Source: Diplonema japonicum
Lineage: Eukaryota; Protista; Euglenozoa: Diplonemea
DNA length: 64,000 bases
Reading direction: 5' to 3'
Assembly (NCBI GenBank): GCA_964019335.1
Contig: OZ025670.1
Span: 310,001 to 374,000, forward strand
Shown here piece after piece: positions 1,219-37,550 of the stretch. The notes below the pieces were generated by a model that was not told where the DNA came from, made no database searches, and worked only from the letters and a program-made list of their open reading frames with translations. A program made the translations under genes and the position numbers. Every line of letters begins with the position of its first letter. Within the stretch, counting starts at the first letter, position 1.

Positions 1219-2724
1219 ATGTCTGCCCAAATGATTGAAGTGCCGATGAAGTTCGAGCTTGTAAGGAACGGGGAAGTGGTGGAGACGCGGAGGACGCGCC
1301 TGGTGAACCCGTCGTTCGAGGCGGTGGCGGCAGTGGGGGCTGGATGGTCGAGGGGGAAGAGCACGACGCTGCAGTACGTGGACGACGAGGGGGACCTTGT
1401 GACGATGGACACTGAGGGGGAGTGGTGCGAGTGCATGCGCTTGTGGAGAGGAGAAGGGACGCTGAAGGTCCGTCTGGTGCTCCCCTCTCTTGAGGGTGGG
1501 AAGGGTCGTGGTCCCTGCTGGTGGAGGAAGGCTGAGAGGTGCAGGAGCAGATCTAGGAGCAGGAGCCGATCAGGGAGCAGGAGCCCAACCAGAAGGTGTG
1601 GCAAGAACTATGGTGTTGCCACGTGGTGGCAGAAATGGATGGGAGATACCACTGGTATGTGGGAGGAGTTCGGCGATGATAAGGAAGAAGACTCGTGTGA
1701 GGTGACAGCTACACAAGCCGTTGTGGTGGAGAAGATCCTGAAGAAGCTTCACGGAGAGGACACGATGGTGGCCCTTGCGAGCGGGACTGTTGACGCGAAG
1801 GCCCTCGGGTGCAAAGGGTGGCTTTCTGTGAAGGTTCTGGAGGACGGTGAAGTGGACCTGGACGTGAAGGTTCGGAAGCTGTACAACATGCTGCACCAGA
1901 AGGGCCTCGACTCCTTGCACTCGAAGGATGTTGAGGCTGTGGACTGGTTCACTCTGTGCACGGAGCTGGAGCCTTCTCGGTGTGTCGGTTGGTACAACCT
2001 TTCCTGTGCTCTGCTGGTGCTGCAGGTTCCCCTTCAGAAGGGAGAGGCGGAGAAGGAGCAGGTTGTGTCACAGGCTCTGGAGGCTTTGGAAGGGGCGGTG
2101 AAGAACGGCTACAGCAAGTGGCGCCACATGGCGACCGATCCTGACCTGGAGGAAGTGAGGAAGAACCCCAGGTTCCTTGTCCTCTTTCCCGAGAGGATCG
2201 GTAGCATGTATGCCAGGAAGCACTCCCTGAAGGGACACCACAAGCAGTGTGTGAAGCGCAGCGATGAGCACCACGGGCACAGCCAGTGCAAGAAGGGGAA
2301 GAAGGAGAAGGAACAGGTTGTGACAGGGGTCCCGTGCAGCAATGGGTGCGGGTTCGAGACAACAGGTGTCTTTAGAAACTATTGCTGCAAGAAGTGTTCG
2401 AAGGGGAAGGGGCATGGGAAGAAGTGTAGACAGCAGCTTGTTGCGCAGACTGCCCCCGAGACCGACTCGTCGGGCACTACCACTGAGCCCTCTTTGGTGG
2501 AACTTCCCGTGCCGGAGCTGTCTGCACCTGAGCCTGAAGTTATTCCCGTTCAAGAAGTGCCCGTTCCTGTGGAGGTGGCGGCACCTGCTCCTGCGGAGAT
2601 GGAGTACGCACAGCAGATCACCGCCCTGCAGGGGATGGGGTTCCCTGTCGACGCAGCCCTGCTTGCCGCCCTCAAGACACACAACGGCGACCTCATGGCA
2701 GTCGTGAACGGCATCCTCATGTGA
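1219..2724 (+). CDS. PB1-TPR-like-Cys/His module-UBA protein, p62/NBR1-like, copy A
   Basis: PB1 OPCA motif YVDDEGDLVTM; WYNLSC...GY...DPDL TPR-like cap; CCxxC...HGxxC module; C-terminal LQGMGF UBA-like motif. Confidence 0.8.
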   Translation: MSAQMIEVPMKFELVRNGEVVETRRTRLVNPSFEAVAAVGAGWSRGKSTTLQYVDDEGDLVTMDTEGEWCECMRLWRGEGTLKVRLVLPSLEGGKGRGPCWWRKAERCRSRSRSRSRSGSRSPTRRCGKNYGVATWWQKWMGDTTGMWEEFGDDKEEDSCEVTATQAVVVEKILKKLHGEDTMVALASGTVDAKALGCKGWLSVKVLEDGEVDLDVKVRKLYNMLHQKGLDSLHSKDVEAVDWFTLCTELEPSRCVGWYNLSCALLVLQVPLQKGEAEKEQVVSQALEALEGAVKNGYSKWRHMATDPDLEEVRKNPRFLVLFPERIGSMYARKHSLKGHHKQCVKRSDEHHGHSQCKKGKKEKEQVVTGVPCSNGCGFETTGVFRNYCCKKCSKGKGHGKKCRQQLVAQTAPETDSSGTTTEPSLVELPVPELSAPEPEVIPVQEVPVPVEVAAPAPAEMEYAQQITALQGMGFPVDAALLAALKTHNGDLMAVVNGILM

Positions 2725-3090
2725 AGCACCCATGGACCACTACTCGTGTTGTTTGGAAAGTAAGAAACGTTATTTTTTCTAAAAAAAAACGAAGAATAAT
2801 TTGTAAGAATGGCGGAGGAGGGGGGGGGGGGGGGATAAAGAAAACACACACCAATTTCTTTTTTTTTTTATACTCTGCTTCGTTTTCTTTCTCTTTTCTT
2901 CATCTTTTTCCTAGCCCCCTTTGTTTTTTTTTTATTATTTTGGAAGGAAAAAAAAAAGAATACCAAAACCTATTGGGAGAAAAAAAAAAAAAAAAAAAAA
3001 AAAACCTCTTTGTTTTCTATCCCAACATCCACATCTAATCAAAAAAAAAAAAAGAGAGAGGAGGTGGAAGGGGGAAGGAAGAAAAAAAAA

Positions 3091-3976
3091 ATGTTGGATG
3101 ACAGGTTGTCGAGCTTGTTTGGAAGCGAAAGGGGCAGCGAGTTAACCCAGCTGTGCAGGTCATATGGCGTTGACGACGAAGCAGATTTGGAGATGAAGAT
3201 AAAGGAAGACCTTCCAATTTTCAGCGAGGAGGAGCTGGATATTATGAAACGGGAGTTTGGGGGAGGACGGGAGAGACACCGACAGCGTAAAGAACACACT
3301 GTAATCAACAATGAACATCTTGACGGCGAAACAGAGGATATGATACAGAATTTCATAAACCAAGCCGACTCCGAGACTGACCGGGAACCCCTAGCTAACG
3401 CTCTGCGTGGCATTGGCAAACCAGACGCAGTCGCCGTAATGCGTAAAGACTACCGGGAAGCAAGGTGCTTCACAGCCCTCGCATTCACCACCATCGGCTC
3501 GTTTCGTACAAAACAGAGAGTCCGTAGATTTGTAGAAGAGAATCGGTTAGAAGGCGAAACCGATGTGGTCGATGCTTTGCACCGCTTAAAGCCCCGTGAT
3601 GTGGCAGGCTGTTTGAAACCCCTTACAGAGGCGCGGGACCCCATCGCGGTTATCCGAGCAAGGATTAACAGGGTTCTCAGGGAGCTGGGGAGACCCGTCC
3701 TCCGTAGCAACAACAGGGACAGGCGGGAACGTGATGTTGGTAGAAAACGCCGGCGATCGTCCTCAGAATCCCGAAGCGGGCGGGACCGGAAACGAACAGC
3801 ACGCCGACGTGCATCCTCTGAAAGCGTGTCATGTGACAGTCAGTATGGGAAAAAAAAAAAAAAAAAAAGAAAAAAACACCTCTTTCAGGGACATTGATCA
3901 GCACACTGCTCGGATCGATGAATTCGTGCGGGAAAATTGTAATGACGATGCTGTGGTATTTTTTTTGGGTGACAAC

Positions 3977-4007
<31 letters not shown>

Positions 4008-4348
4008 AGCGCACACTTCAAAACCTGAAGGAGCTCCCCATGCGTGCCGCGGTGAAGATCATGGCGAAGGACCTCAGCACTGCGAAGAACAAAACCGCTG
4101 TCATCTTCTCGAGGATCAACGACGCACGGTCTGCCGGGCCCAGGACCGCGGAGAGGATCGACGCGTACTGCCGGAAGAATAGACTCGACGACGACACCGA
4201 GGACAGGCTGCGATGCCTTCCCAAGTTAGAGGCACTGTACGTAATGGATAAGGACTATTCCCACCTGAAGGACCCAAACAGCATGGTGCTCGCAAGCTGT
4301 AAGAACGCGAAGGGTGCTGAGGACTATATTTCGAGGTACAATGCGGGG

Positions 4349-7628: not shown

Positions 7629-7974
7629 CATAATAGAAGGAAAAAAAGTTTTTTTTTTCCCCTGTTCTCTAACCTTTACTTTGTTTCTCACCCTCCCATC
7701 CCCTCTCTCCCTTACCAAATAAAAAAAAAAAAGGGAAAAACTTTTTTATGTCCCCCCCTTTTTTTTTCCTCCTAAGTAGTTTAGCATGTTCTTTTTTTTC
7801 TTCTTTTCCCCTATTCTTCGTTTCTTCCTTTGTATTTTTCTCTGTTCTCAGACATCAGAGGAAAAAAAAAAGAATAAAAGATTATGTTCCCCCCAAGTAT
7901 CGCCGTCGTTTAAAAGAAGAAAAAGAAACATCCAGTGGGGGGAGGGGGCAAGAAGAAGGGGAAACAAAAATACA

Positions 7975-9303
7975 ATGCCGCCTGTGCCGCCGCCACCGCC
8001 GGGTGCTAAGGGAGGCCCACCTCCCCCTCCTGGGGGGAAAGGGGCGCCCCCACCTCCCCCTCCGGGGGGGAAAGGAGCCCCCCCACCCCCTCCTGGGGGG
8101 AAGGGTCCCCCCGCACCCCCGGGGGGTGCGGCACCTCCGCCTGCGCCAAAGCCAGGTGCTAAAAAAACAGTGAAAAAAGCGAACCCTGGTGCATTATTAG
8201 CAGAGCTGGCTGCAGGGGGGTTCAAATTAAAGAAGACAGTTACAGTGGACAAGTCAAAGAACTTACCTGATCCGCAGTTCATGGAAAAGAAACAGGTGGC
8301 TGCACCCCCACCACCCTCAGGTGGTCCCCCACCACCCCCTCCTGGGGGGAAGGGGCCCCCACCACCCCCGGGGGGTGCGGCACCTCCGCCTGCGCCAAAG
8401 CCAGGTGCTAAAAAAACAGTGAAAAAAGCGAACCCCGGGGCACTATTAGCAGAGCTGTCTGCAGGGGGGTTCAAATTAAAGAAGACAGTTACAGTGGACA
8501 AGTCAAAGAACTTACCTGATCCGCAGTTCATGGAAAAGAAGCAGGTGGCTGCACCCCCACCACCTGCAGGTGGTCCTCCACCACCCGCAGCTGCTCCTCC
8601 ACCTACAACTAGCCTTCCACCCACAGCTCCGCCTCCAAAGCACCAGACATTGCTGCCGGATACCAGGTTAAGCGGAAGAGGGTGGGAAGTGGCTATGATG
8701 GCCGAGTCGGCCGTCGAGCGGTTCAACAAAGACAGTGGGCTGCTTACGCAGACATTTATCAAGGAGCTGCTGTACATGGAAGCAGAGTGGCGCATGGACG
8801 TATGTCACGCCACCATCAAACACAACACACAGGCGGAGACCAAAGAGAGACGAGAGCGGAGAGAGCTCAGTATGGAAGAGCTGCAAGAGGTGGATGGCAT
8901 GCGGGCAGCTGAGTCCGTGAGCATAGGTGAGAAATTGGGAGGCTACAGCCCAAACGGGTCGGGTGAGCTAGCCTCGTATCTAAGAGCCGATGCACCGTAC
9001 GCAAGGCCGTCGACACGGGACAAAGGTTTCGAGCTGGCAGCCCTGATGGCACGAACACCGCCTGCTCCGCGGACTGACCACAGGGCCTCCTTCTACCGCC
9101 CCCAGGTACAGCAATCTTACAATGCAGAGCTTAGCGCGCTCCAATCAGCTATTTCCGCTGCCCGTGCCAGAAGCCCTCACACGTCCTTGCATGCTTATAA
9201 CCCCCCCTCAAACCATCCGCGGCCAGGCCTCCAGACCTACTACACCGCAGAGGGCGCACGCTACTTCTACGATCCTGTCTCGGGTGAGACGCGATGGGCT
9301 TGA
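7975..9303 (+). CDS. Proline-rich protein with two WH2 motifs and a C-terminal WW-like domain (WIP/verprolin-like actin regulator)
   Basis: ALLAEL.AGGFKLKKT occurs twice (WH2 LKKT motif); poly-Pro tracts; YYTAEGARYFYDPVSGETRW. Confidence 0.7.
   Translation: MPPVPPPPPGAKGGPPPPPGGKGAPPPPPPGGKGAPPPPPGGKGPPAPPGGAAPPPAPKPGAKKTVKKANPGALLAELAAGGFKLKKTVTVDKSKNLPDPQFMEKKQVAAPPPPSGGPPPPPPGGKGPPPPPGGAAPPPAPKPGAKKTVKKANPGALLAELSAGGFKLKKTVTVDKSKNLPDPQFMEKKQVAAPPPPAGGPPPPAAAPPPTTSLPPTAPPPKHQTLLPDTRLSGRGWEVAMMAESAVERFNKDSGLLTQTFIKELLYMEAEWRMDVCHATIKHNTQAETKERRERRELSMEELQEVDGMRAAESVSIGEKLGGYSPNGSGELASYLRADAPYARPSTRDKGFELAALMARTPPAPRTDHRASFYRPQVQQSYNAELSALQSAISAARARSPHTSLHAYNPPSNHPRPGLQTYYTAEGARYFYDPVSGETRWA
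8085..8580 (+). repeat. Intragenic tandem duplication, about 249 bp unit x2 (Pro-rich segment plus WH2)
   Basis: Near-identical DNA offset by 249 nt, e.g. aaaaaaacagtgaaaaaagcg at 8161 and 8410. Confidence 0.9.
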
Positions 9304-18880: not shown

Positions 18881-20496
18881 AATTTCTTTTGAATTTTTTT
18901 GGGAAATTGACTTTTTCGGGTTTTTAGCCTGTGGGCTTAGTGGTCTAAAAAGAAAAAAAAAAAAAAAAAAAGAAAAAGGTACACGTTCACAACATAGATA
19001 TACTAATATCTCTTCTTGAGTGTTGAAACATATCTCCCCCCCCCCCCTTCTTAAAAACTTGTGTGGGGCTGCAATCCATAACGACTGCAAAACACCCCTC
19101 TCTGCTTTATGGTGCTCTTCGAAGCTGTGTCATTTTGAAATTGTGGCAAACCTTGGCATTAAAAAAGATAGGATTTTTTTTTTTCTTTTTTTTCTCTCTT
19201 TCTCTCCTTTTTTTTTTTTTTTTAAAGGTGGTAGGGATAAACATGGAGATATAAAAAAAAAAAAAAAAAAAAAAAAATACTTCAGATGTGTCATTTCGTT
19301 GTTTGACCTTATCATCGGTCATCACCGGTAGCACCCTAGTATTGCTTGATGTGCCGAGGTGCCCCTGTAATCAAGTACACACAGCTTGGCAGGGCACCAC
19401 CACACTGGCCTCTTTTTCATTTTTTTTTCTCTTTTTTCTTTCAATTCAGCTCTCACTGTGAAGTTTTTATTTTTATTTTTTATGAACTTAAATTTCACCC
19501 AGACGGTGACATTAGTTTGGTGTGCAGGTGGCCCTCCCCCCTTTTTTTTTCTTTCTTTTTTTGAGATGATGGGGTTGCTATCTTCACACCCTCACCTCTT
19601 TTCTTTTATATTTCGACATCACCATCACAGTGAATATTCTTTTTTCTCGGGGGGGGGGGGGGGGGGTTGTAAACTCCCTAATGTCCTAACTCTCTGCAGA
19701 TTTGCCGATTTTTTTTATTTTATTTAAATTATTTTACAGAAGAAGAACATAAACAAGAAAGGAAGAAAGAAAAAAAAAAAAGAAACGAGAAATAAAGTCT
19801 TGGATAACGCGGCCTATGGGGAGGAAAGAAGGTGAAAAGAAGAGGGGGAGGGGGGAAATTTTCTTCTTTTCCCTCTTCGTACTCCTTACCCCCCTTGGCC
19901 TAAGGCAATATGAACTTAGAAAACCTTTTTTTTTCCCCGAGGAAATGACGCCTTTTGTGCACCTTTTTTAACTTGTGCACGCCCTTTAAACGTTTTTCGC
20001 TGGGGAGGACACAGCGACTACAGGGAACCACGGAGTTCTGAAAAGTCTCTAGTATGCACTTCTCAGATCCAGTTGTGTCACCAAAGTTATAAAACTGAAT
20101 TTTCCTTAATCTTGAGCCAGTTTTATTGAAATAAAAATTATTATTTTTCTTTTGCCGTGTTGCATATCCCACTTTTTTTTTTTCTTGTTGTGTGCTTTCA
20201 CCCTCCTTTCTTCTTTTTTTTTTCCAACTCTCCATTTTTTTCTCCACCCCCCCCCCCCTGCCATCTCTTCTTTTTTTCATGAAGGAGAAAAGAAAAAGGA
20301 ATTGGCTTTACAACCACCCCCTCCCAAAAAAATGGAGAAATACGCAAACTTTTCCCCTTTTACCCCTCCCCCCCCCCGCCCCTTTTTATTATTTTATTTT
20401 TCTTCTTCTCCACACCTTTTTATTTAGTTTCATTTTAGTTTTATGCAAAAAAAAAAGAACACGTTCAAATATAAAAAGGCGAGGGAAAGGAGGAAA

Positions 20497-23274
20497 ATGA
20501 GTTTAACATGGGAAGATATGACAGACTCGGAAGGAGAGGAACAACAACAACAACAAGACACTGAAAAAGAAGCCCCAGAAGAGGAGGCCATAGAAGAAGA
20601 GGATGAGGAAGAATACCGCATCGACGAAAGCGACGGGCGGAGGTACTGCGAAAGAGAGTTCGAGGAGTGCTACGGGGGCAAAAAGGAATGGGAAGACGCA
20701 TGGGCGGTGGGAAAGGTCCCATGGGGCTGCAGCTACTGTGGAGTCACAGACGTGGGCTGCGTCCTGCAGTGCGAAGACTGCAACAAATGGTTCTGCAACG
20801 AGAAGACAGGGACACACGACGTGTCGCATGCTGCCGTGCATCTCATGCTGTCAGGGTCCAAGGTGATGACACCACACCCAAAAGCACCTTTACACGCAGC
20901 AGACCTATCATGCCACAGTTGTTCCTCGAAGAACTTCTTCCTCTTAGGGTACATACCCCATGCTACAGACCCGAATGCATCAGTCCTCCTTTGCCGTGAG
21001 CCGTGCCTTCACGCCTGCACCTCTGATATCATAGGTAACCGTGCAGAGTGGGTTCCTTTGATACAAGAGAAACGGCTGCAAACGTGGATCGCTGGGAACG
21101 ACGAGACGAGCACTGCAACATACACGCCCACCCTCAGGGAGGTCAAGGAGTTCGAACGATGCTTGAAGTCCGACCCCAGCACCACTATAAACGATGTGAC
21201 GCGTGCCAAGCGTGAGGAGGTTGAGTTGCCGCTTCACTTCAGCGATGGTGAGCATTATAAGGAGGTTATGTCTCCGCTGGTCGACCTCGAGGCCGCCACC
21301 GACAAGGAGCTTTGCGAAGAGCAGAAGCTCAACAAACTTGAGGTCACATGGAAATCCGCCGACAAGTGTGCTTTCATGATGTACTCGGGTGACGGGTCCG
21401 TACGCATTAGTCGCTACGACATCATCATGCTGCAGAACATGCAGCGCACGTGGAAAAAAGAAATGCGCATCACCAACGTCGAGGACAAACCGAACGGCTC
21501 CAAGCTCCTTGAAGCCGATTCCACCGGTAAGCCCTCCAAACCCGTCCCTGGCCCCTACATCCTATCCCTTGAGTGGAACGAAGCCCCGTTCTCTCGTGTC
21601 CGAGGTGCCATCAACATGTTCGCCACGTCCGAGACAGCCTGCTCTGAGGAAGTCTACCGCGTGCTGCTTGGCCACGGCAGTAGTAACTTTAGCGTCCCTT
21701 CTGTTAAGCCTGTGAAGCCCCCCGGCCTCCCTGAACTCAACCACTCACAGCTGTCAGCCATCTCCCATGCCTTGAAGAACCCCGTGTCCCTTATCCAAGG
21801 CCCGCCAGGTACGGGCAAGACAACGACGTCTGCTGCTGTGGCATACAACCTTGTGCAGCAGCATGGCACTCTTCTTGCCTGCACGCCGTCCAACACTGCA
21901 GCAGACCACTTGGCGGCCACCATCTCGCGGACAGGGTTGCGGGTTGTGAGGCTTCTTTCGAAAGTGAAGGAGATGGAGATGAGCAAAAGCGAGGCCGACC
22001 ACCTGAGCCTCAACAGGCAGCTTGCAGCGTTGGTCTCCGACGCACCTCCCGACAGTGAAGTTTCGCAGCTGTTAAAGCGGCGTGACAAAGGAAGGGGCCT
22101 GGACGGGAAGGAAGCACGGCGGCTGGATGTGCTGCAGGGTGACCTGCAGAGCGAGCTTATTGATAAGGCGGACGTTGTGGTGTCAACGTGTGTGTCAGCA
22201 GGTGACTATAGGCTGAAGGGGCACAAATTCGAGGCCGTGTTGATCGATGAGGCGACGCAGGCAACGGAGCCGGAGCTGCTGGTGGCCATCATGAAGGGTT
22301 GCACGCAGTTGGTACTTGTCGGGGATCACTGCCAGCTGGGACCGGTGGTTGTGTCTGACGACGCAAAGCTTCGTGGCTTGCAGCAGTCGTTGTTCGAGCG
22401 GATGATACGACTTGGCGTGGTGCCCGAGAGGCTGCTGGTGCAGTACCGCATGCACCCATCGCTGTCGACATGGCCGTCGGGAGCTTTCTACGACGGCGCG
22501 CTGCAGAACGGCGTAGCGGAGATGGAGCGCATGGACAGCCATGAGGTACCGTGGCCGAGGGCAGAGCACCCTTTACTGTTCCTGCACAGCACGTCGCCTG
22601 AGGAACTGGCATCAAGCGGGACATCATACGTGAACAGAGCAGAGGCGGTTGTGATCGAGAAGAGCGTGGCGACACTATTGCAGGTGGGCATCACACCGGA
22701 CTGCATCGGGATCATCACGCCGTACGAAGGGCAGCGATCGTACATCAATGCGGTATTCAGCAGAAGCTCCGTGCAGGGCATTCAATCCGTAGAGGTGTCC
22801 AGTGTCGATGCCTTCCAAGGACGGGAGAAAGAGTACATCTTGCTGTCCACTGTTCGGAGCAACGAAGGGCAAGGCATAGGATTCCTAACCGACCCTCGCA
22901 GGCTCAACGTCGCTCTGACCAGGGCGCGAAGGGGGCTTGTCGTTGTGGGTAATATAAAGTCCCTCGGTAGAAATGTGTTGTGGCACAGCTTCTTGCAGCA
23001 CCTGAGTGACCTGGGTGTAATCAGTGAGGGATGGCTTGCTGAAGGGGAGCTCCGTCCTTGCACTGTGTACATCCCTGAGCCACGCGCTCCTAGGCAAACA
23101 GGGGCGCTCCCCACATGGACCACCTGCGACCCTCCCCTGACTCCTCCAGCATCATCTATTGATATCATCTCGCAGCCCGAGCTCGATCTCATAAGTGAGT
23201 CCCTTTCTACCTTGTCTGCAGGACCGCCTTCGCTTGCGTCGTTCTCTACAAGGTCTGTGGTCAGCAAGCGGTGA
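20497..23274 (+). CDS. UPF1: UPF1/RENT1-like SF1B RNA helicase (nonsense-mediated decay)
   Basis: CH zinc domain (CSYCG...CNKWFCN...LLCREPC); ELNHSQ; QGPPGTGKT; IDEATQATEPE; QYRMHP; VDAFQGREKEY; RRLNVALTRAR. Confidence 0.9.
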   Translation: MSLTWEDMTDSEGEEQQQQQDTEKEAPEEEAIEEEDEEEYRIDESDGRRYCEREFEECYGGKKEWEDAWAVGKVPWGCSYCGVTDVGCVLQCEDCNKWFCNEKTGTHDVSHAAVHLMLSGSKVMTPHPKAPLHAADLSCHSCSSKNFFLLGYIPHATDPNASVLLCREPCLHACTSDIIGNRAEWVPLIQEKRLQTWIAGNDETSTATYTPTLREVKEFERCLKSDPSTTINDVTRAKREEVELPLHFSDGEHYKEVMSPLVDLEAATDKELCEEQKLNKLEVTWKSADKCAFMMYSGDGSVRISRYDIIMLQNMQRTWKKEMRITNVEDKPNGSKLLEADSTGKPSKPVPGPYILSLEWNEAPFSRVRGAINMFATSETACSEEVYRVLLGHGSSNFSVPSVKPVKPPGLPELNHSQLSAISHALKNPVSLIQGPPGTGKTTTSAAVAYNLVQQHGTLLACTPSNTAADHLAATISRTGLRVVRLLSKVKEMEMSKSEADHLSLNRQLAALVSDAPPDSEVSQLLKRRDKGRGLDGKEARRLDVLQGDLQSELIDKADVVVSTCVSAGDYRLKGHKFEAVLIDEATQATEPELLVAIMKGCTQLVLVGDHCQLGPVVVSDDAKLRGLQQSLFERMIRLGVVPERLLVQYRMHPSLSTWPSGAFYDGALQNGVAEMERMDSHEVPWPRAEHPLLFLHSTSPEELASSGTSYVNRAEAVVIEKSVATLLQVGITPDCIGIITPYEGQRSYINAVFSRSSVQGIQSVEVSSVDAFQGREKEYILLSTVRSNEGQGIGFLTDPRRLNVALTRARRGLVVVGNIKSLGRNVLWHSFLQHLSDLGVISEGWLAEGELRPCTVYIPEPRAPRQTGALPTWTTCDPPLTPPASSIDIISQPELDLISESLSTLSAGPPSLASFSTRSVVSKR

Positions 23275-25759: not shown

Positions 25760-26983
25760 ATGTCTATCCAAATGATTGAAGTGCCGATGAAGTTCGAGCT
25801 TGTAAGGAACGGGGAAGTGGTGGAGACGCGGAGGACGCGCCTGGTGAACCCGTCGTTTGAGGCGGTGGCGGCAGTGGGGGCTGGATGGTCGAGGGGGAAG
25901 AGCACGACGCTGCAGTACGTGGACGACGAGGGGGACCTTGTGACGATGGACACTGAGGGGGAGTGGTGCGAGTGCATGCGCTTGTGGAGGAGCGGGGTGG
26001 CGAACAAGGCCCTCGTGGTTCGTCTGGTGCTCCCCTCTCTTGAGGGTGGGAAGGGTCGTGGTCCCTGCTGGTGGAGGAAGGCTGCCGAGAGGTGCAGGAG
26101 CAGGAGCCGATCAGGGAGCAGGAGCCGGGAGGAGCAGGGAGCAGGAGCCGGGAGGAGTAGGGAGCAGGAGGCTGAGAGGTGCAGGAGCAGATCCAGGAGC
26201 AAGAGCCCTTGCAACGAGCGTCAGCAGACCGTCGAGAACCTTAGGGAGTGGGCGCAGCTCCCTACCTTCAGGTCTAAGGACATGGGGGCCGAAGCGGGAG
26301 AGCAATGCAAGGGGTGTGACTACATGACGACTGGTGTGGCACCTGGACACTGCTGCTGGGCTTGCATGAGCGGGACATCTCAGCACGGCCCCATGTGCAT
26401 GAGGCAGCAGCAGCCGCAGCAGCCTGAAAAGGCTCACACGGATGTTGTTGAGGGAGAGACGGCTGTTGAAGAGGCCCACATGGATGTTGTGGAGGAAGCA
26501 GTTCAGGAGCAATGCAGTGGGTGTAATATATCGCTCCCTGAGGGGGTGGCTGGAATGTGTTGCGAGCAGTGTGCGAACAACAACAAGAGGGAAGAGAAGG
26601 AGCCTGAACACCTTCTTTGGGTACCCGAGGTGCCCCCCCTGAGCCCTGTAGAAGCCCTGCTCCCCTTTCAGTCATCTGTCGCAGGGTCGTCTCCTGTGTT
26701 AGTAGATGTGCCTGAGTGCGAAGGGACATCGATCTGTGGTAGTATCGAATCTTTGACACATGAGCTAGTGGACCCTGTCCCAGCACCTGAACTTGAATTA
26801 GATGAACAGGATGAAGTGCCCGTTCCTGTGGAGGTGGAGGCACCTGCTCCTGCGGAGGTGGAGTACGCACAACAGATCACCGCCCTGCAGGGGATGGGGT
26901 TCCCTGTTGACGGAACCTTGCTTGCCGCCCTGAAGGTCAACAACGGTGACCTTGCGAAGGCTGTGAACATGCTGTTGATGTGA
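25760..26983 (+). CDS. PB1-Cys/His modules-UBA protein, copy B (lacks the TPR-like block)
   Basis: PB1 nearly identical to the other copies; expanded RS linker; one full and one partial Cys module; UBA-like LQGMGF. Confidence 0.8.
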   Translation: MSIQMIEVPMKFELVRNGEVVETRRTRLVNPSFEAVAAVGAGWSRGKSTTLQYVDDEGDLVTMDTEGEWCECMRLWRSGVANKALVVRLVLPSLEGGKGRGPCWWRKAAERCRSRSRSGSRSREEQGAGAGRSREQEAERCRSRSRSKSPCNERQQTVENLREWAQLPTFRSKDMGAEAGEQCKGCDYMTTGVAPGHCCWACMSGTSQHGPMCMRQQQPQQPEKAHTDVVEGETAVEEAHMDVVEEAVQEQCSGCNISLPEGVAGMCCEQCANNNKREEKEPEHLLWVPEVPPLSPVEALLPFQSSVAGSSPVLVDVPECEGTSICGSIESLTHELVDPVPAPELELDEQDEVPVPVEVEAPAPAEVEYAQQITALQGMGFPVDGTLLAALKVNNGDLAKAVNMLLM

Positions 26984-27521: not shown

Positions 27522-28250
27522 ATGCTGAGCCCCGACGAGTCGCCTTGGTTAGAAAACCTCGTTGCGTACCATAACAAACACAAGACTGGGGCAAGTGTAC
27601 ATGATGTAAAGCAATTGTTAGTTGATCACAATGGCTTTGAAGAAGATTATTACAAGACACTGGAAGCAAAGTATGGCGAGAGGCCAGAGTGGCCCGAGAA
27701 TGTTCCACAGAGGGAGGAAGAAGATATGTGTCAGGGGACATCCGTCCAAGCAGGCCTTCTTGCTCAGCTAGCCATGACAAAATCTGTCATCGAAGACTTG
27801 GAAGATCAGCTCAAGTCAAACGGCTCTGATGAGGTATTAAGCTTAAGAAAGCTCCTCAGGGAAAGCCAAGAAAGGGAAAGGAAACAAATACGTCTGAATA
27901 ACCATCTTTCAGAAAGATTGCTCAACCTTACAGCCGCTCTTAGGGAACTGCAAAAGCAAGCCGAGGGTTCACAAGAACCTGAGAGCTTTGATGATGTTGG
28001 GGTAGATGAAATTGAGGCCCCACCGCAAACACGGTCCCTTCCAAGTAGTACTCCTGAGGAGCAAAATGAGGGCTTACAAGAACAGCCTCAGCCTCAGCCT
28101 CAGCCACACCCCACACCTGCTACCGAATACAAAAAGCAAATCGAGTCGCTACAAGGGATGGGCTTCCCTATAGACGACACCTTGTTGACTGCGCTTCGCA
28201 TAACGAGAGGAAACGTTGCCAGAACCGTCGAGATGCTCTTGGTGTTCTGA
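27522..28250 (+). CDS. Small helical domain-coiled coil-UBA protein
   Basis: C-terminal EYKKQIESLQGMGFPIDDTLL homologous to the UBA of the PB1 family; unrelated N-terminus (LEAKYGERP). Confidence 0.7.
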   Translation: MLSPDESPWLENLVAYHNKHKTGASVHDVKQLLVDHNGFEEDYYKTLEAKYGERPEWPENVPQREEEDMCQGTSVQAGLLAQLAMTKSVIEDLEDQLKSNGSDEVLSLRKLLRESQERERKQIRLNNHLSERLLNLTAALRELQKQAEGSQEPESFDDVGVDEIEAPPQTRSLPSSTPEEQNEGLQEQPQPQPQPHPTPATEYKKQIESLQGMGFPIDDTLLTALRITRGNVARTVEMLLVF

Positions 28251-28622: not shown

Positions 28623-30329
28623 ATGTCTGCCCAAATGATTGAAGTGCCGATGAAGTTCGAGCTTGTAAGGAACGGGGAAGTGGTGGAGACGCGGAGGACG
28701 CGCTTGGTGAACCCGTCGTTCGAGGCGGTGGCGGCAGTGGGGGCTGGATGGTCGAGGGGGAAGAGCACGACGCTGCAGTACGTGGACGACGAGGGGGACC
28801 TTGTGACGATGGACACTGAGGGGGAGTGGTGCGAGTGCATGCGCTTGTGGAGGAGCGGGGTGGCGAACAAGGCCCTCGTGGTTCGTCTGGTGCTCCCCTC
28901 TCTTGAGGGTGGGAAGGGTCGTGGTCCCTGCTGGTGGAGGAAGGCTGCCGAGAGGTGCAGGAGCAGATCCAGGAGCAGGAGCCGATCAGGGAGCAGGAGC
29001 CCTTGCAAGAGGCGCCAGAGTCCCTGCCGAAGGGGGTGGGGCTTCATGATGGAGAGCATCGATGCAGAGGAACCAGAGAAGGCACCAACTGCGTCTCAGG
29101 CTGTTGTGGTGGAGAAGATCCTGAAGAAGCTTCACGGAGAGGACACGATGGTGGCCCTTGCGAGCGGGACTGTTGACGCGAAGGCCCTCGGGTGCAAAGG
29201 GTGGCTTTCTGTGAAGGTTCTGGAGGACGGTGAAGTGGACCTGGACGTGAAGGTTCGGAAGCTGTACAACATGCTGCACCAGAAGGGCCTCGACTCCTTG
29301 CACTCGAAGGATGTTGAGGCTGTGGACTGGTTCACTCTGTGCACGGAGCTGGAGCCTTCTCGGTGTGTCGGTTGGTACAACCTTTCCTGTGCTCTGCTGG
29401 TGCTGCAGGTTCCCCTTCAGAAGGGAGAGGCGGAGAAGGAGCAGGTTGTGTCACAGGCTCTGGAGGCTTTGGAAGGGGCGGTGAAGAACGGCTACAGCAA
29501 GTGGCGCCACATGGCGACCGATCCTGACCTGGAGGAAGTGAGGAAGAACCCCAGGTTCCTTGCCCTCTTCCCCGAGAGGATCAGGGACAGGGTGGCGGCA
29601 CGCCTTTCAGATGATGAGTCGCCTTTCTCCAAATGTGGTCGTGGACAGAGACGTGGACATGGGCACTGGCACGGACACGGACACAAACACGGACACCACG
29701 AAGGTCACGGTTGGGGTGGGATGCATGCCTTGAGAGGATTCATGGGTGGGATGTACAACTGTGAAGAAAACAAAGAAGCTGAAGTTCACCCTCTTGCCCG
29801 CTTGTTCGGAAAACGGATGGAGAAGGAGGAGGAACAGGTTATGACGCGGGTCAAGTGCAGTGGGTGCGGGTTCATGACAACAGGGCTAACTGCCGATTAC
29901 TGCTGCAAGGCGTGTGCGAAGGGGAAGGGACATGGGAAGAAGTGTGAACAGAAGTCATTTCTCAATATGGAAATGATGGAACCCGAGCCAACAATCCCCG
30001 TGCAATCTGAACCCGTTCTTGAGGTACCTCTTCGTGGGTGGGGGGAGGAGCCCTTGGTTTGTGAATCGGTTTCCGACCCTCTACCTTCTGCCCCTGCTGT
30101 GGACTGCCTCCCAAAAATACCTCTGGAACCTTCTATTCCTTGTTCTGAACCCCAACCTGTCATGATAGAGCAAGCGCCTGTTCCTGTACCTGAACTTGAA
30201 GAGATGGAATACGTAGAGCAGCTATCAGCCCTGCAGGGGATGGGCTTCCCTGTCAACGAAGCACTGCTTGCCGCCCTGAAGGTCAACAACGGCGACCTTG
30301 CGAAGGTTGTGGACATGCTCTTCGCTTAA
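28623..30329 (+). CDS. PB1-TPR-like-His/Gly-Cys module-UBA protein, copy C
   Basis: Same motifs as copy A plus a GHGHWHGHGHKHGHH tract. Confidence 0.8.
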   Translation: MSAQMIEVPMKFELVRNGEVVETRRTRLVNPSFEAVAAVGAGWSRGKSTTLQYVDDEGDLVTMDTEGEWCECMRLWRSGVANKALVVRLVLPSLEGGKGRGPCWWRKAAERCRSRSRSRSRSGSRSPCKRRQSPCRRGWGFMMESIDAEEPEKAPTASQAVVVEKILKKLHGEDTMVALASGTVDAKALGCKGWLSVKVLEDGEVDLDVKVRKLYNMLHQKGLDSLHSKDVEAVDWFTLCTELEPSRCVGWYNLSCALLVLQVPLQKGEAEKEQVVSQALEALEGAVKNGYSKWRHMATDPDLEEVRKNPRFLALFPERIRDRVAARLSDDESPFSKCGRGQRRGHGHWHGHGHKHGHHEGHGWGGMHALRGFMGGMYNCEENKEAEVHPLARLFGKRMEKEEEQVMTRVKCSGCGFMTTGLTADYCCKACAKGKGHGKKCEQKSFLNMEMMEPEPTIPVQSEPVLEVPLRGWGEEPLVCESVSDPLPSAPAVDCLPKIPLEPSIPCSEPQPVMIEQAPVPVPELEEMEYVEQLSALQGMGFPVNEALLAALKVNNGDLAKVVDMLFA

Positions 30330-30690: not shown

Positions 30691-31203
30691 ATGCCGAAGA
30701 ACAAAGGAAAGGGAGGAAAGAACAGGAAGAGGGGCACGAACAAGAACGAGCCTGAGAAGCGAGACCTGAACCTGAAGGAGGAAGGGCAGGAGTACGGGCA
30801 GGTGATCAAGATGCTCGGAAACGGGAGGCTGGAGGTGTACTGCTTCGATGGGACGAGGAGGCTGGGAGTGATCTGCGGGAAGATGAGGAAGAAGAGTTGG
30901 GTGAGCAACGGGGACATTGTGCTGGTGGGGCTGAGGGACTTCCAGGACAGCAAGTGTGACGTGATCATGAAGTACCTTCCTGACGAGGCGAAGCGTCTGC
31001 AGAAGATGAAGGAGATCCCGGAGCATGTGAAGCAGAACGAGGACGAGGACACGAGGCCGGGTGACGACAACATCGTCTTCGAGCATGGCTCTGACGACTC
31101 GGACGATGACGAGTACCAGCCGCAGGGCAACGCACGCTACCAGCCCGGCGACTCCGATGAGGAGTCAGGCGAGCTCGAAGACTTCAACGTCGATGACATC
31201 TAG
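30691..31203 (+). CDS. EIF1A: Translation initiation factor eIF1A, copy 1
   Basis: [15 protein letters not shown]; [18 protein letters not shown]; LRDFQD; acidic tail. Confidence 0.95.
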
Positions 31204-31750
31204 AGAGCCCTGGGGGGCCTGAGAAGGGTGGGGAGGATGGAGCAAGATAGGTGTCAAGTAGAAGAGACTGTAACGGCAGTATCAGCAGTACACAACACAT
31301 CACAGCGATTACGGAATGGGAACACACAATTTACTTGAACCCACTAAAGACGTGTTTATCAATTTTCTTGTTAGGTTCTTTGCCCCCACAGGCGGCAACC
31401 TGTGAGACTGGGCAGGAGAGCGAGACAGGTCAATCAACTTTCTCGCCCTTCGCTGGTCCTTGCCAGCAACCCTTCCAAGCGAGCACGTCCACAGTGAACA
31501 GAAAATAGAGGGTGTTGTTCCCGACAAGCAACCGAGAAGAAAGATTAGAAAAAAAAAAGAATTTAAAAAAAAAAAAGATTTAACAAAAAAAAAAACGTTT
31601 TCATCTTAATATGTATTGGAGGGAGGAGCCCCCCCAAGAAAAAAAGAGAAAGCCTACCCCCCCCCCCCCCCACCCGTCCACCTGTTATTTTCTGTTTTTT
31701 TTTTCCCATTCATATTAGTATCTGAGTGTTTTTGAAAGGGGGTGGAGGAG

Positions 31751-32571
31751 ATGGACGAAGAAAGCTCCCCAGGACCTCCTCCGGCACAAGGTTTATGCAG
31801 GGACTTGGAGTTATTCGTGGCGACCCCAGATGACCTGGTGTGTGAAATAGGAGGTGGTGTGATTATTGAACCTGTTGTGATAGATGTAGAAGGGTGCAGG
31901 CATGTGTTCTGTAAGGGGTGCATGGCTGCCTGGTCGGGTACGTGCCCTCTGTGTAAGACGCCTTATAGCAGCGAGAACCTAACGGCGTCGGTGGCTCACA
32001 AGCTGAGGGCGTTGGAGCTGACTGCGAAGTGCGACCACAAGAACAAAGGTTGTTCATGGGAAGGGAAACTAGCATTCCTTCACGACCACCTGCAGGAATG
32101 CCTTCACACCACAAAGGTGGAGTGCTACTATTGGATGTACGGGTGCTCCTACACGGGAACTGCTGAGGAACGAGAGCACCACCTCCTCGATCAAGCGCAA
32201 GAACACCTCCAACTTCTCTGCCAACGTCTTGAAGCCTATGGTGACAATGGTGAGTTCCCTGTCACTCCTGAAACCGATGCTGTAATTAAACACTCAGGAG
32301 GGCTTACTGATGACCAGTGTGACTTGTTTCGTGTGTCTGTCTCGCAGAGCCTTTCCCCTGTAGATATCTCGTCTAGGTTTCGGGAGCTTTACCCCACGCA
32401 GGCCTGGTCGGTGATGAAGTGCCTCCGTTCTGGTTGCGACCAACACGTTGAATCCTTGGTGTGATTTTTTTTTTTTTTTTTTTTTTTGAACTTCTTTTTA
32501 AACTCCATTAGGGCTTCGTCGAAATCGCTTACAGGCATCATCTCTGGACTCTCATCTCCAACAAGCTTTAG
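31751..32571 (+). CDS. RING plus TRAF-type zinc finger protein with a C-terminal extension; intron 32459-32511
   Basis: GCRHVFCKGC...CPLCK; CDHKNKGCSWEG...HLQEC; VECYYWMYGC...HL. Confidence 0.75.
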
Positions 32572-33296: not shown

Positions 33297-33403
33297 GTAA
33301 GTACCAACTCTTTTTTAAAAGTGCTTTTGTTTCTTGCTTTAATTGGAAACCATACACAGCTGTTCCTTTCCACACCACACACACACACACACACACTATC
33401 ACA

Positions 33404-35248
33404 ATGTCTGCCCAAATGATTGAAGTGCCGATGAAGTTCGAGCTTGTAAGGAACGGGGAAGTGGTGGAGACGCGGAGGACGCGCCTGGTGAACCCGTCGT
33501 TTGAGGCGGTGGCGGCAGTGGGGGCTGGATGGTCGAGGGGGAAGAGCACGACGCTGCAGTACGTGGACGACGAGGGGGACCTTGTGACGATGGACACTGA
33601 GGGGGAGTGGTGCGAGTGCATGCGCTTGTGGAGAGGAGAAGGGACGCTGAAGGTCCGTCTGGTGCTCCCCTCTCTTGAGGGTGGGAAGGGTCGTGGTCCC
33701 TGCTGGTGGAGGAAGGCTGCCGAGAGGTGCAGGAGCAGATCCAGGAGCAGGAGCCGATCAGGGAGCAGGAGCCCTTGCAAGAGGCGCCAGAGTCCCTGCC
33801 GAAGGGGGTGGGGCTTCATGATGGAGAGCATCGATGCAGAGGAACCAGAGAAGGCACCAACTGCGTCTCAGGCTGTTGTGGTGGAGAAGATCCTGAAGAA
33901 GCTTCACGGAGAGGACACGATGGTGGCCCTTGCGAGCGGGACTGTTGACGCGAAGGCCCTCGGGTGCAAAGGGTGGCTTTCTGTGAAGGTTCTGGAGGAC
34001 GGTGAAGTGGACCTGGACGTGAAGGTTCGGAAGCTGTACAACATGCTGCACCAGAAGGGCCTCGACTCCTTGCACTCGAAGGATGTTGAGGCTGTGGACT
34101 GGTTCACTCTGTGCACGGAGCTGGAGCCTTCTCGGTGTGTCGGTTGGTACAACCTTTCCTGTGCTCTGCTGGTGCTGCAGGTTCCCCTTCAGAAGGGAGA
34201 GGCGGAGAAGGAGCAGGTTGTGTCACAGGCTCTGGAGGCTTTGGAAGGGGCGGTGAAGAACGGCTACAGCAAGTGGCGCCACATGGCGACCGATCCTGAC
34301 CTGGAGGAAGTGAGGAAGAACCCCAGGTTCCTTGCCCTCTTCCCCGAGAGGATCAGGGACAGGGTGGCGGCACGCCTTTCAGATGATGAGTCGCCTTTCT
34401 CTAGACATGCCCGGGTCAGCCACGGTGGGTGGGGTGGCATGGGCGCCTTAAAACGATTCCTTGGTGCGATGCACCACCCTCCTCTTGGGCATGTACACTA
34501 CCACCAACAGTCCCCGATTTTCGTAGCAGGAGAGCAATGCAAGGGGTGTGACTACATGACGACTGGTGTGGCACCTGAGCACTGCTGCTGGGCTTGCACG
34601 CAGGGAGCTGTGAACCACGGCCCATTGTGCGCTAAGCAGAAGAAAGTCGTGGTTGTGGAGGAAGAGAAGGCTATCGTGGAACAAATTCAAGAGCAATGCA
34701 GAGGGTGTGGGTCTTCGCTCCCTGAGGGGGTGGCTGGAATGTGTTGCAAGCAGTGTGTGAAGCACAATGGTGAACGCCACGGAGCCCGTTGCTGTTTGTA
34801 CCCCAAGGAGAAGAAGCAGAAGGGAATTTTAACGGGAGTTAAGTGCAAAAATGACTGCAGGTTCGAAGTGACGGGGCTTGCTAACGGGTACTGCTGCAAA
34901 GCGTGTGCGAAGGGGAAGGGTCATTCGAAGAAGTGCGAACAGAAGCCATTTCCATCCCTCGATATTGAAAAATTAAAACCCATACTTGAACCTCTCCTCG
35001 AGATTGTCCCTGCATCATCACCTGTGACCTCCGATCACTCTGTGGTGGAGGAACCAGCAGAACCAGAAATGTCGGAACCAGAGCCAGTCCCCGTGGAGGT
35101 GTCAGTACCAGCGCCTGCAGAAATTGAGTACGCACTGCAAATTAAAGCCCTACAAGGGATGGGCTTCCCTGTTAACGAAGCGCTGCTTTCCGCCCTGAAG
35201 GTCAACAACGGTGACCTTGCGAAGGTTGTGGACATGCTCTTTGCATAA
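33404..35248 (+). CDS. PB1-TPR-like-three Cys modules-UBA protein, copy D
   Basis: Same conserved blocks; three CCxxC-H-C modules. Confidence 0.8.
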   Translation: MSAQMIEVPMKFELVRNGEVVETRRTRLVNPSFEAVAAVGAGWSRGKSTTLQYVDDEGDLVTMDTEGEWCECMRLWRGEGTLKVRLVLPSLEGGKGRGPCWWRKAAERCRSRSRSRSRSGSRSPCKRRQSPCRRGWGFMMESIDAEEPEKAPTASQAVVVEKILKKLHGEDTMVALASGTVDAKALGCKGWLSVKVLEDGEVDLDVKVRKLYNMLHQKGLDSLHSKDVEAVDWFTLCTELEPSRCVGWYNLSCALLVLQVPLQKGEAEKEQVVSQALEALEGAVKNGYSKWRHMATDPDLEEVRKNPRFLALFPERIRDRVAARLSDDESPFSRHARVSHGGWGGMGALKRFLGAMHHPPLGHVHYHQQSPIFVAGEQCKGCDYMTTGVAPEHCCWACTQGAVNHGPLCAKQKKVVVVEEEKAIVEQIQEQCRGCGSSLPEGVAGMCCKQCVKHNGERHGARCCLYPKEKKQKGILTGVKCKNDCRFEVTGLANGYCCKACAKGKGHSKKCEQKPFPSLDIEKLKPILEPLLEIVPASSPVTSDHSVVEEPAEPEMSEPEPVPVEVSVPAPAEIEYALQIKALQGMGFPVNEALLSALKVNNGDLAKVVDMLFA

Positions 35249-35407
35249 ATTAGTAGGTCGAAATGCTCGTGCTAGTTTTTTTTTATTTTCCCCCCCCTTT
35301 GATTCCATCTAGCCTAATTCCACTGTTTTCATATTCTACAATCTTTTTTCTTATTTTTTATTACTACAATTGACTTGTCTTTCAAAAAAGAAATGTTTTT
35401 TTTTTTC

Positions 35408-35535
35408 TTACCTTATGCAACTTGTGCCGAGCAACAGAAAAATAAAATAAAAAACTTTAGCAGCTTTTTCTAAATTTATTTTTTTTACTCGTGCGAAACA
35501 AAACAAGAAAGACATAAGTCATAAAGGATTTTTTT
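35408..35535 (+). repeat. Dispersed non-coding element, copy 1
   Basis: ttaccttatgcaacYtgtgccgagca ... ctcgYgcgaa ... aaagacataRgtcaYaa shared with 58352-58436. Confidence 0.75.
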
Positions 35536-35699
35536 CTTGAGTCTCACTTGCCAACGTGGGTTTCTGTGATTAGTATTTCATTTCAGTTCACTTGGTTCCC
35601 GTTCTGGTTTATCTATCTTTGAAGTAGCGTGATATATTCCGAACCACCTTTATTCCGCAAAAATGACCACCACAGCTATATCCACACAAAACAAACACA

Positions 35700-37550
35700 A
35701 TGTCTGCCCAAATGATTGAAGTGCCGATGAAGTTCGAGCTTGTAAGGAACGGGGAAGTGGTGGAGACGCGGAGGACGCGCTTGGTGAACCCGTCGTTCGA
35801 GGCGGTGGCGGCAGTGGGGGCTGGATGGTCGAGGGGGAAGAGCACGACGCTGCAGTACGTGGACGACGAGGGGGACCTTGTGACGATGGACACTGAGGGG
35901 GAGTGGTGCGAGTGCATGCGCTTGTGGAGGAGCGGGGTGGCGAACAAGGCCCTCGTGGTTCGTCTGGTGCTCCCCTCTCTTGAGGGTGGGAAGGGTCGTG
36001 GTCCCTGCTGGTGGAGGAAGGCTGCCGAGAGGTGCAGGAGCAGATCCAGGAGCAGGAGCCGATCAGGGAGCAGGAGCCCTTGCAAGAGGCGCCAGAGTCC
36101 CTGCCGAAGGGGGTGGGGCTTCATGATGGAGAGCATCGATGCAGAGGAACCAGAGAAGGCACCAACTGCGTCTCAGGCTGTTGTGGTGGAGAAGATCCTG
36201 AAGAAGCTTCACGGAGAGGACACGATGGTGGCCCTTGCGAGCGGGACTGTTGACGCGAAGGCCCTCGGGTGCAAAGGGTGGCTTTCTGTGAAGGTTCTGG
36301 AGGACGGTGAAGTGGACCTGGACGTGAAGGTTCGGAAGCTGTACAACATGCTGCACCAGAAGGGCCTCGACTCCTTGCACTCGAAGGATGTTGAGGCTGT
36401 GGACTGGTTCACTCTGTGCACGGAGCTGGAGCCTTCTCGGTGTGTCGGTTGGTACAACCTTTCCTGTGCTCTGCTGGTGCTGCAGGTTCCCCTTCAGAAG
36501 GGAGAGGCGGAGAAGGAGCAGGTTGTGTCACAGGCTCTGGAGGCTTTGGAAGGGGCGGTGAAGAACGGCTACAGCAAGTGGCGCCACATGGCGACCGATC
36601 CTGACCTGGAGGAAGTGAGGAAGAACCCCAGGTTCCTTGCCCTCTTCCCCGAGAGGATCAGGGACAGGGTGGCGGCACGCCTTTCAGATGATGAGTCGCC
36701 TTTCTCCAAATGTGGTCGTGGACAGAGACGTGGACATGGGCACTGGCACGGACACGGACACAAACACGGACACCACGAAGGTCACGGTTGGGGTGGGATG
36801 CATGCCTTGAGAGGATTCATGGGTGGGATGTACCACCACCAACAACACTTGCAAAATCAGCAGCCCGCAACCCACTTCACAGCAGGAGAGCAATGCAAGG
36901 GGTGTGACTACATGACGACTGGTGTGGCACCTGGACACTGCTGCTGGGCTTGCATGAGTGGGACATCTCAGCACGGCCCCATGTGCATGAGGCAGCAGCA
37001 GCCTGAAAAGAAGGCCCACATGGATGTTGTGGAGGAAGCAGTTCAGGAGCAATGCAGTGGGTGTGGTATGTCGCTCCCTGAGGGGGTGGCTGGAATGTGT
37101 TGCAAGCAGTGTGTGAAGCACAATGGTGAACGCCACGGGCCACACTGCCCCCTTCACCCCCGGGAGTGCAAGAGGGGGAAGAAGGGGAAGAAGGAGAAGG
37201 AACAGGTTGTGACGGGGGTCCCGTGCAACGGTGGGTGCGGGTACGAGGCAAGGCTTGCTGCCGGTTTCTGCTGCAGGGTGTGTTTGAAGGGGAAGGGACA
37301 TGGGACGAAGTGTGAACTGAAGCCATTTGTTCTCGAGATGGAAATGATGGAACCCGTTCCTTCTCCCCTTGTGGAATCCTCGCCTCCTCCCACCTGGGAA
37401 CCTCTTCCTGAACCTGCGGAGGTGGAGTACGCACAACAGATCACCGCCCTGCAGGGGATGGGCTTCCCTGTCAACGAAACCGTGCTTGCCGCCCTGAAGG
37501 TCAACAACGGTGACCTTGCGAAGGTTGTGGACATGCTTCTTCTAAGCTGA
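35700..37550 (+). CDS. PB1-TPR-like-His/Gly-three Cys modules-UBA protein, copy E
   Basis: First ~1.1 kb essentially identical to copy C; Cys modules shared with B, D and A. Confidence 0.8.
   Translation: MSAQMIEVPMKFELVRNGEVVETRRTRLVNPSFEAVAAVGAGWSRGKSTTLQYVDDEGDLVTMDTEGEWCECMRLWRSGVANKALVVRLVLPSLEGGKGRGPCWWRKAAERCRSRSRSRSRSGSRSPCKRRQSPCRRGWGFMMESIDAEEPEKAPTASQAVVVEKILKKLHGEDTMVALASGTVDAKALGCKGWLSVKVLEDGEVDLDVKVRKLYNMLHQKGLDSLHSKDVEAVDWFTLCTELEPSRCVGWYNLSCALLVLQVPLQKGEAEKEQVVSQALEALEGAVKNGYSKWRHMATDPDLEEVRKNPRFLALFPERIRDRVAARLSDDESPFSKCGRGQRRGHGHWHGHGHKHGHHEGHGWGGMHALRGFMGGMYHHQQHLQNQQPATHFTAGEQCKGCDYMTTGVAPGHCCWACMSGTSQHGPMCMRQQQPEKKAHMDVVEEAVQEQCSGCGMSLPEGVAGMCCKQCVKHNGERHGPHCPLHPRECKRGKKGKKEKEQVVTGVPCNGGCGYEARLAAGFCCRVCLKGKGHGTKCELKPFVLEMEMMEPVPSPLVESSPPPTWEPLPEPAEVEYAQQITALQGMGFPVNETVLAALKVNNGDLAKVVDMLLLS

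Follow-up and report, generated by a model that had tools for sequence, protein, structure and literature searches.

NBR1, the closest described counterpart of the genes studied here, is defined by PB1, ZZ, FW, LIR and UBA elements; it is held to be ancestral to eukaryotes and occurs as a single gene in most non-metazoans, and p62 is its metazoan offshoot (PMC9582228). Surveys of PB1 proteins recognize kinase, Phox (TPR plus PB1) and NBR1 groups, and no PB1-TPR-UBA group (PMC7051960). In the literature that we searched, we found no description of a PB1-TPR-UBA family and none of selective-autophagy receptors in Euglenozoa. Here, we analyze a stretch of 64,000 nucleotides (nt) from the euglenozoan Diplonema japonicum (contig 23, bases 310001-374000, of a genome of 62.5 Mb in 132 contigs; hereafter the window, with positions counted from its first letter), which carries five paralogous genes that we call A to E. 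We put at roughly 60% the probability that A-E are five intact, transcribed members of an undescribed euglenozoan family that would act, to judge from their predicted domains, as NBR1-like ubiquitin-binding PB1 scaffolds.

The five genes are uninterrupted open reading frames (ORFs) on the + strand and require no spliced model: A (501 amino acids (aa), 1219-2724), B (407 aa, 25760-26983), C (568 aa, 28623-30329), D (614 aa, 33404-35248) and E (616 aa, 35700-37550). In their alignment, PB1 is followed by an Arg/Ser tract, a variable middle and a conserved tail with the UBA. The first-pass annotation of the window, made by a model from the letters alone, had described five intronless paralogues at these positions with a near-invariant PB1 and a conserved UBA, and both the ORFs and the alignment agree with it. 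E, which holds the complete set of parts, comprises the PB1 domain (aa 1-92, 35700-35975), an Arg/Ser-rich tract predicted to be disordered (36030-36077), a helical plus TPR-like domain (aa 157-335, 36168-36704), a His/Gly tract followed by the conserved motif GWGGMxALxxFxGxM (36732-36830), three Cys modules (36882-36995, 37041-37157 and 37212-37322, the second with an extra His after its fifth Cys) and a UBA domain with an MGF loop (37410-37547). An AlphaFold2 model of E built from 12 family sequences shows three confident domains, the PB1, middle and UBA regions described below.

In the model, E residues 1-92 adopt a beta-beta-alpha-beta-beta-alpha-beta fold. Foldseek places the PB1 domain of NBR1 first (2bkf, E 5e-4), followed by the PB1 domains of aPKC, Par6, MEKK and p62; VIA, an independent aligner, matches it to NBR1 PB1 2g4s with a Z of 12.1 and a root-mean-square deviation of 1.9 over 83 residues; and a profile made from ten PB1 domains of the family matches NBR1 PB1 at E 1e-5. 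By profile and modeled fold, the N-terminus is thus a PB1 domain, nearest to that of NBR1. Residues 1-77 are the same in all five proteins, with the sole exception of A3I in B, and residues 78-87 exist in two variants, GEGTLKV in A and D versus SGVANKALVV in B, C and E. Across the family, the basic Lys of strand beta-1 (K11) is conserved in at least 90% of members, R24 is nearly invariant and R25 invariant, as are Y53, D55, D59, E68 and W69 of the OPCA motif, in line with the annotation's reading of a PB1 with both a basic Lys and an OPCA motif. Since both features are present, the domain has both faces for head-to-tail assembly, and it probably forms head-to-tail homo- and hetero-oligomers.

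At the other end of E, residues 572-615 are modeled as three helices with a predicted local distance difference test (pLDDT) score of ∼90, and the isolated segment passes the Pfam UBA model (25.4 bits, cut-off 22.4). The nearest solved structures to the family UBA are those of ubiquilins (E 3e-3). The C-terminus is, on sequence and model, a UBA domain, and it probably binds ubiquitin. That the termini would fold as PB1 and UBA had been proposed beforehand and is borne out by Foldseek, VIA, the profile, the Pfam UBA model and AlphaFold2.

With these ends, the proteins most resemble NBR1, especially plant AtNBR1/Joka2, which likewise carries an N-terminal PB1 and a C-terminal UBA, and the NBR1 PB1 is the closest solved one by both profile and fold. 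AtNBR1 also has a PB1 with the basic Lys and OPCA motif that permit self-polymerization (PMC9582228). Unlike NBR1, A-E have a TPR-like domain and Cys modules in place of the ZZ/FW core, and the family counts 14 genes in the genome versus one. They share with p62/SQSTM1 a PB1 with both faces, a cysteine-rich, putatively zinc-binding middle and a UBA tail, and K11 aligns with K7 of p62 provided that the beta-1 strand aligns without gaps; yet the ZZ, TB, LIR and KIR elements of the p62 middle were not found here, and p62 is restricted to metazoans (PMC9582228), whereas the host here is a euglenozoan. Like the plant Phox family and p67phox/NCF2, they combine TPR repeats with PB1 (PMC7051960), but in those proteins the TPRs are N-terminal, PB1 comes after and there is no UBA, whereas here PB1 comes first and UBA last. 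On sequence, A-E are therefore not members of NBR1 or p62, although they may work alike.

We propose a layout of PB1, disordered Arg/Ser tract, helical/TPR-like domain, zero to three Cys6His modules, Pro/Glu linker and UBA, in which the PB1 domains would join head to tail into homo- and hetero-oligomers, the UBA tails would hold ubiquitin, and the TPR-like domain and Cys modules would offer additional partner-binding surfaces. As NBR1-like multivalent scaffolds, such assemblies could gather clients marked with ubiquitin and perhaps pass them to autophagy. The proteins may plausibly serve as autophagy receptors; their receptor function and any specificity for cargo or metals are properties that we infer from the sequence. 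ATG8 genes are present in the genome.

Several results weigh against the NBR1-like scaffold reading. The Pfam PB1 model scores under its cut-off in all five proteins, though the PB1 of a metagenomic relative does exceed it. No ZZ match was found in the five proteins, and the 11 ZZ sites of the genome all lie away from the PB1 genes of the family. The FW or NBR1 central domain (PF16158) is absent from the five proteins and from a search of the whole genome, and outside the folded parts of A-E there is no conserved acidic [W/F/Y]xx[L/I/V] LIR motif; a W-E-P-L core ahead of the UBA occurs in E alone among the five. The label p62/NBR1-like used in the annotation fits the PB1 and UBA; the ZZ and FW elements and a conserved LIR motif were not found. 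VIA itself deems the Z range reached by the middle domain ambiguous for helical repeats. For the Cys module, searches with Pfam, PDB sequences, Foldseek, VIA and hhalign gave no recognizable relative. As to the reality of the copies, the mosaic EukProt isoforms described below may be assembly chimeras, and the read comparison covers D and E, with A, B and C outside the compared region.

If the family does perform the NBR1 job, a core quality-control adaptor would have been rebuilt and multiplied in a highly abundant group of marine protists: the genome has ATG8, no detectable NBR1 central domain, and 14 genes with an NBR1-like PB1, mostly with a UBA around a different core. A wider claim would be that in diplonemids and euglenids canonical NBR1 has been replaced by expanded PB1-TPR-UBA selective-autophagy receptors, whose shared PB1 is kept by gene conversion and supports mixed polymers and whose variable-copy zinc finger, itself undescribed, adds ubiquitin or cargo binding; taken as a whole, we regard this chain of propositions as possible but doubtful. 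What is new is the combination of an undescribed architecture with an undescribed domain. Diplonema papillatum is genetically tractable and carries related genes, among them KAJ9461774.1, KAJ9455493.1 and KAJ9465047.1, which offers a route to functional tests.

The middle domain of E (residues 157-335) is modeled with pLDDT >90. With VIA, residues 210-335 match the three-repeat TPR domains of Sti1 (TPR2B), Sgt2, HOP (TPR1) and PP5 at Z 9-10, the ambiguous range mentioned above, and the five proteins have no match to a Pfam TPR model at E ≤1. The model supports a three-repeat TPR-like domain, as the annotation had suggested for this block. The proteins might then be adaptors linked to chaperones and the proteasome, whose TPR docks the tails of Hsp70 or Hsp90 in the manner of CHIP, Sgt2 and HOP and whose UBA, like that of ubiquilin, delivers clients to the proteasome. 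In structure, the middle domain indeed matches EEVD-binding three-TPR domains best, and the closest solved UBAs are those of ubiquilins; the proteins also share with the ubiquilin/Dsk2 shuttle factors a beta-grasp head, a helical middle and a C-terminal UBA. However, the carboxylate-clamp positions, read from the alignments, vary across the family, which led us to reject a carboxylate-clamp TPR, and by fold and profile the head is a PB1 with an OPCA motif rather than the proteasome-binding ubiquitin-like domain of ubiquilin and Rad23. A Pfam scan of the five proteins detected no STI1 motifs of the ubiquilin type. We consider this explanation unlikely.

The five middles differ in which parts they contain, and here the annotation's table of parts proved correct. 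All but B have the TPR-like block and module 3; C and E carry the His/Gly tract; B, D and E share module 1; and module 2 is complete in D and E and partial in B. To this we add that A retains the second half of module 2. A thus consists of PB1, Arg/Ser tract, a linker of its own, the TPR-like block, half of module 2, module 3 (2323-2436) and UBA (2602-2721), and lacks the stretch that starts with the His/Gly tract and stops halfway through module 2. B has PB1, two Arg/Ser tracts, module 1 (26294-26407), a module 2 truncated before its His...Cys end, a tail of its own and the UBA (26861-26980), without the TPR-like block and module 3. In C, which lacks modules 1 and 2, PB1, Arg/Ser tract and TPR-like block are followed by the His/Gly tract (29655-29711), one module (29844-29954), a long Pro/Glu linker and the UBA (30207-30326). 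D has PB1, Arg/Ser tract, TPR-like block, a short variant of the His/Gly tract, modules 1-3 (34526-34639, 34685-34804 and 34832-34945) and UBA (35126-35245). The order of parts never varies among A-E, and D and E hold the full set. We considered frameshifted relics of the missing parts in B and rejected them, all tblastn matches there being in frame.

DNA homology among the copies begins about 27 nt upstream of the ATG and ends at the stop codon, and the flanks are unrelated. The four copies with a TPR-like block (A, C, D and E) are 98-100% identical in DNA across the ∼1 kb that starts at the splice acceptor and closes with this block, which excludes chance resemblance. Synonymous divergence (dS) is 0-0.06 in the 5' kilobase versus 0.3-0.9 in the modules and UBA, with omega mostly 0.2-0.6. 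A dS near zero in front and of 0.3-0.9 behind indicates old duplicates whose front halves were homogenized, repeatedly and until recently, by gene conversion, and the 3' halves are, from these ratios, under mostly purifying selection. The annotation had inferred that identical PB1 domains let the paralogues co-polymerize; the near-zero synonymous divergence of this part marks concerted evolution, so that the invariance of PB1 is no evidence of selection for co-polymerization and, on this reading of the sequences, reflects gene conversion and not only selection. The 44 informative sites fall into ten split patterns where one five-taxon tree permits two. By the four-gamete test, 561 of 946 site pairs are incompatible, and p is 0.034 in a PHI-like permutation. 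Partial concerted evolution within genes is seen here in a clean form.

The exchange may reach further along the contig. A 186-nt PB1 tract is 97% identical in a paralogue 107 kb downstream (contig 23:452693-455932, gene at 1498-2478), the rest of which cannot be aligned, a sign of long-range gene conversion. From the shared tract, contigs of both RNA and DNA run on into that downstream gene. The onset of homology among the copies coincides with the AG trans-splice acceptor, and we therefore considered retroposition; it was rejected, as there is no leader remnant, no shared 3' untranslated region (UTR) and no genomic A-tract after the copies.

A, B and C are best read as internal-deletion derivatives of a D/E-like full set, with gene conversion added. 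The competing idea, put forward as combinatorial cassette swapping in the annotation, is a programmed or adaptive receptor repertoire in which cassettes are actively shuffled between paralogues to give new cargo specificities. Common ends with differing middles are what it would predict, recombination among the copies is extensive, and module number runs from one to four among the relatives in other species. But the collinearity of the parts is strict, the half-module left in A and the truncated one in B look like remnants of deletions, omega mostly stays under 1 and amino-acid change shows no consistent excess, and five copies fit ordinary birth, deletion and conversion. The invariant order together with the two damaged modules makes deletion plus conversion the simpler account, and we think a shuffled repertoire quite unlikely.

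The cysteine-rich parts had been listed as three discrete modules. They are present as listed, but modules 1, 2 and 3 align with each other and with modules of other family members and are copies of one domain. It spans ∼35 residues, with a core of ∼31, and contains six invariant Cys and one invariant His in the pattern C-x2-4-C-x11-15-CC-x2-C-x6-8-H-x3-C. A module profile finds at least 44 sites in the D. japonicum genome, which makes this Cys6His module a candidate new domain family. A model of one module, made from 29 sequences (mean pLDDT 76), shows short hairpins followed by a helix. Searches for relatives returned no consistent Pfam family, with weak matches to prokaryotic metallothionein appearing, a best E of 1.4 against PDB sequences, a best Foldseek E of 1.6 for the model, and nothing at Z ≥2 with VIA. 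Among the known zinc fingers tested (A20, AN1, ZZ, MYND and TRASH/FCS), none matched by sequence model or fold. An A20-type finger, suggested by the pattern CxxC-G-F...C-x2-C, was rejected, as the A20 model matches nothing in the genome and an A20 structure appears only at a Foldseek E of 7.6. So was an AN1 finger, suggested by the ligand pattern C2-C2-CH-HC: its hhalign probability is 1%, and the AN1 model bypasses the modules and matches five other genome sites, none of them a module. An ESM Atlas search with a three-module protein gave nothing useful, and word-based homologue searches with that protein and with the E module region returned self matches alone. We treat the module as an unclassified zinc-finger-like domain, whose putative zinc binding is read from the ligand pattern.

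Modules also occur outside the family. Small proteins made of three modules only are encoded on contigs 33 and 100, and on contig 33 three such genes, near 210.8, 247.3 and 295.3 kb, have identical scores at a spacing of 36-48 kb. Two modules plus a C-terminal domain are found in proteins on contigs 7 and 99. The products of these multi-copy small genes with two or three modules are metallothionein-like in composition. On contig 78, a module lies on a protein-kinase ORF with a hydrophobic stretch read as a membrane span, and on contig 61 on a PhyH-type dioxygenase-like protein.

A function in metal handling would have the His/Gly tract and the Cys modules buffer or sense zinc, copper or nickel, with the module-only proteins acting like metallothioneins. 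The six invariant Cys and one invariant His in each ∼31-residue core, the His/Gly tract of C and E, the existence of three-module-only proteins and the weak Pfam matches to prokaryotic metallothionein are all in keeping with it. Nevertheless, the regular ligand spacing and the predicted hairpin-plus-helix fold are like those of a structural zinc finger, the presence of the module on a kinase and on a dioxygenase is usual for interaction domains, and three of the five paralogues lack the His/Gly tract. We judge metal handling improbable as the function of A-E.

The family extends well beyond the window. The PB1 profile identifies 14 clear and two weak members in the genome, nine of the clear ones outside A-E, so that the annotation's expanded family now has a genome-wide count. 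In most members, the TPR-like domain is accompanied by one or two Cys modules and the UBA. In one on contig 73 (232744-235959, gene 355-1752, minus strand), PB1 and the TPR-like block flank a VHL beta-domain (Pfam E 1.3e-7). Against 1.84 billion representative proteins, the family profile gave 9863 matches at E ≤0.001, 51 of them at E ≤1e-30; many span PB1 to UBA, and many weaker ones cover the TPR-like part alone. The sources of 30 matches were looked up, and those named are the diplonemids Diplonema ambulator, D. papillatum, Rhynchopus, Flectonema, Namystynia, Artemidia and Sulcionema and the euglenids Chasmostoma and Neometanema. Three NCBI records, from D. papillatum, are labeled hypothetical proteins, and the transcriptome entries bear no functional name. 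D. papillatum and Rhynchopus include relatives that have one to four Cys modules and no TPR-like block.

In a FastTree phylogeny, A-E form one clade (support 97), which three further D. japonicum genes adjoin, with the D. ambulator gene as sister of these eight together (support 99); other paralogues cluster with genes of other species. The similarity among A-E is inflated by conversion, and the tree cannot date the duplications. As B is nested within the A-E clade, its missing TPR-like block is a secondary loss.

We compared sequencing contigs from four runs in three studies with window positions 33300-37700, the D-E region. Contig pieces without a single difference span the modules and UBA that are specific to D (34753-35219), the D-E spacer in full and on into E (35209-35710, seen in two studies) and the E-specific stretch in which the TPR-like block leads by way of the His/Gly tract to module 1 (36049-36914). 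One run is RNA-like: in one of its contigs a spliced-leader end (...CAGTTTCTGTACTTTATT) is fused to position 35675, which lies 25 nt upstream of the ATG of E, and this places the AG trans-splice acceptor of E at 35673-35674 (+ strand). Another contig of this run stops after 35615 in an A-rich tail that is not genomic, giving D a 3' UTR of ∼367 nt; ∼60 nt separate this probable poly(A) site (∼35615) from the acceptor of E. A search for the 3' half of the kinetoplastid/diplonemid spliced leader gives 232 occurrences in the genome versus 0 for a control pattern. Family genes are thus transcribed and trans-spliced, with the poly(A) end of D probable.

EukProt Trinity transcriptome proteins contain B-, C-, D- and E-specific segments. 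The isoforms combine these segments in arrangements absent from the genome; they are probably de Bruijn-graph chimeras arising from the identical first kilobase, a caution for users of that transcriptome. In the genome assembly, for D and E the junctions and spacer are matched without differences, and A, B and C lie outside the compared region. That the five genes are chimeric repeat joins or pseudogenes is scarcely credible: ∼1 kb of identical sequence can mislead assemblers and the Trinity isoforms are mosaics of genomic copies, but all five frames are open, the junctions specific to D and E and the spacer between them agree without a difference with contigs of three independent studies, each copy has unique flanks, and the published assembly (62.30 Mb, no annotation yet) comes from 102-fold PacBio HiFi reads averaging ∼9 kb (PMC13598402).

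The + strand carries nearly all long ORFs of the window. Polycistronic transcription in euglenozoans predicts such one-strand gene orientation. A and B are separated by 24.5 kb with ∼9 unrelated ORFs inside, and the family genes are interleaved with a UBA-only gene, two eIF1A copies and a RING gene; the cluster is not a pure tandem array. The UBA-only gene, F (∼242 aa from the first ATG, 27522-28250, + strand), lies between B and C and encodes a coiled coil and a C-terminal family-type UBA without a PB1; this UBA has an LQGMGFP motif, scores 24.2 bits (above the cut-off) and is clearly akin to that of the family. The eIF1A genes follow C (30691-31203) and E (37855-38367), with a Pfam eIF-1a E of 2.5e-22, and are 100% identical over an aligned 300-nt repeat. 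This suggests a segmental duplication of C-eIF1A and E-eIF1A units, or that eIF1A undergoes gene conversion too.

Between C and D, a RING-finger-type ORF (31742-32464) has a C3HC4 pattern and weak TRAF/Sina-like matches. It is a possible E3 ligase beside genes of ubiquitin-binding type, and its placement may be coincidence. Between A and B lies an intronless gene for a UPF1-type RNA helicase (20443-23274), with the UPF1 zinc-binding domain and AAA_11/AAA_12. An ORF with WH2 and WW motifs (7786-9303) holds two tandem 249-nt units (8078-8575) that are 96% identical.

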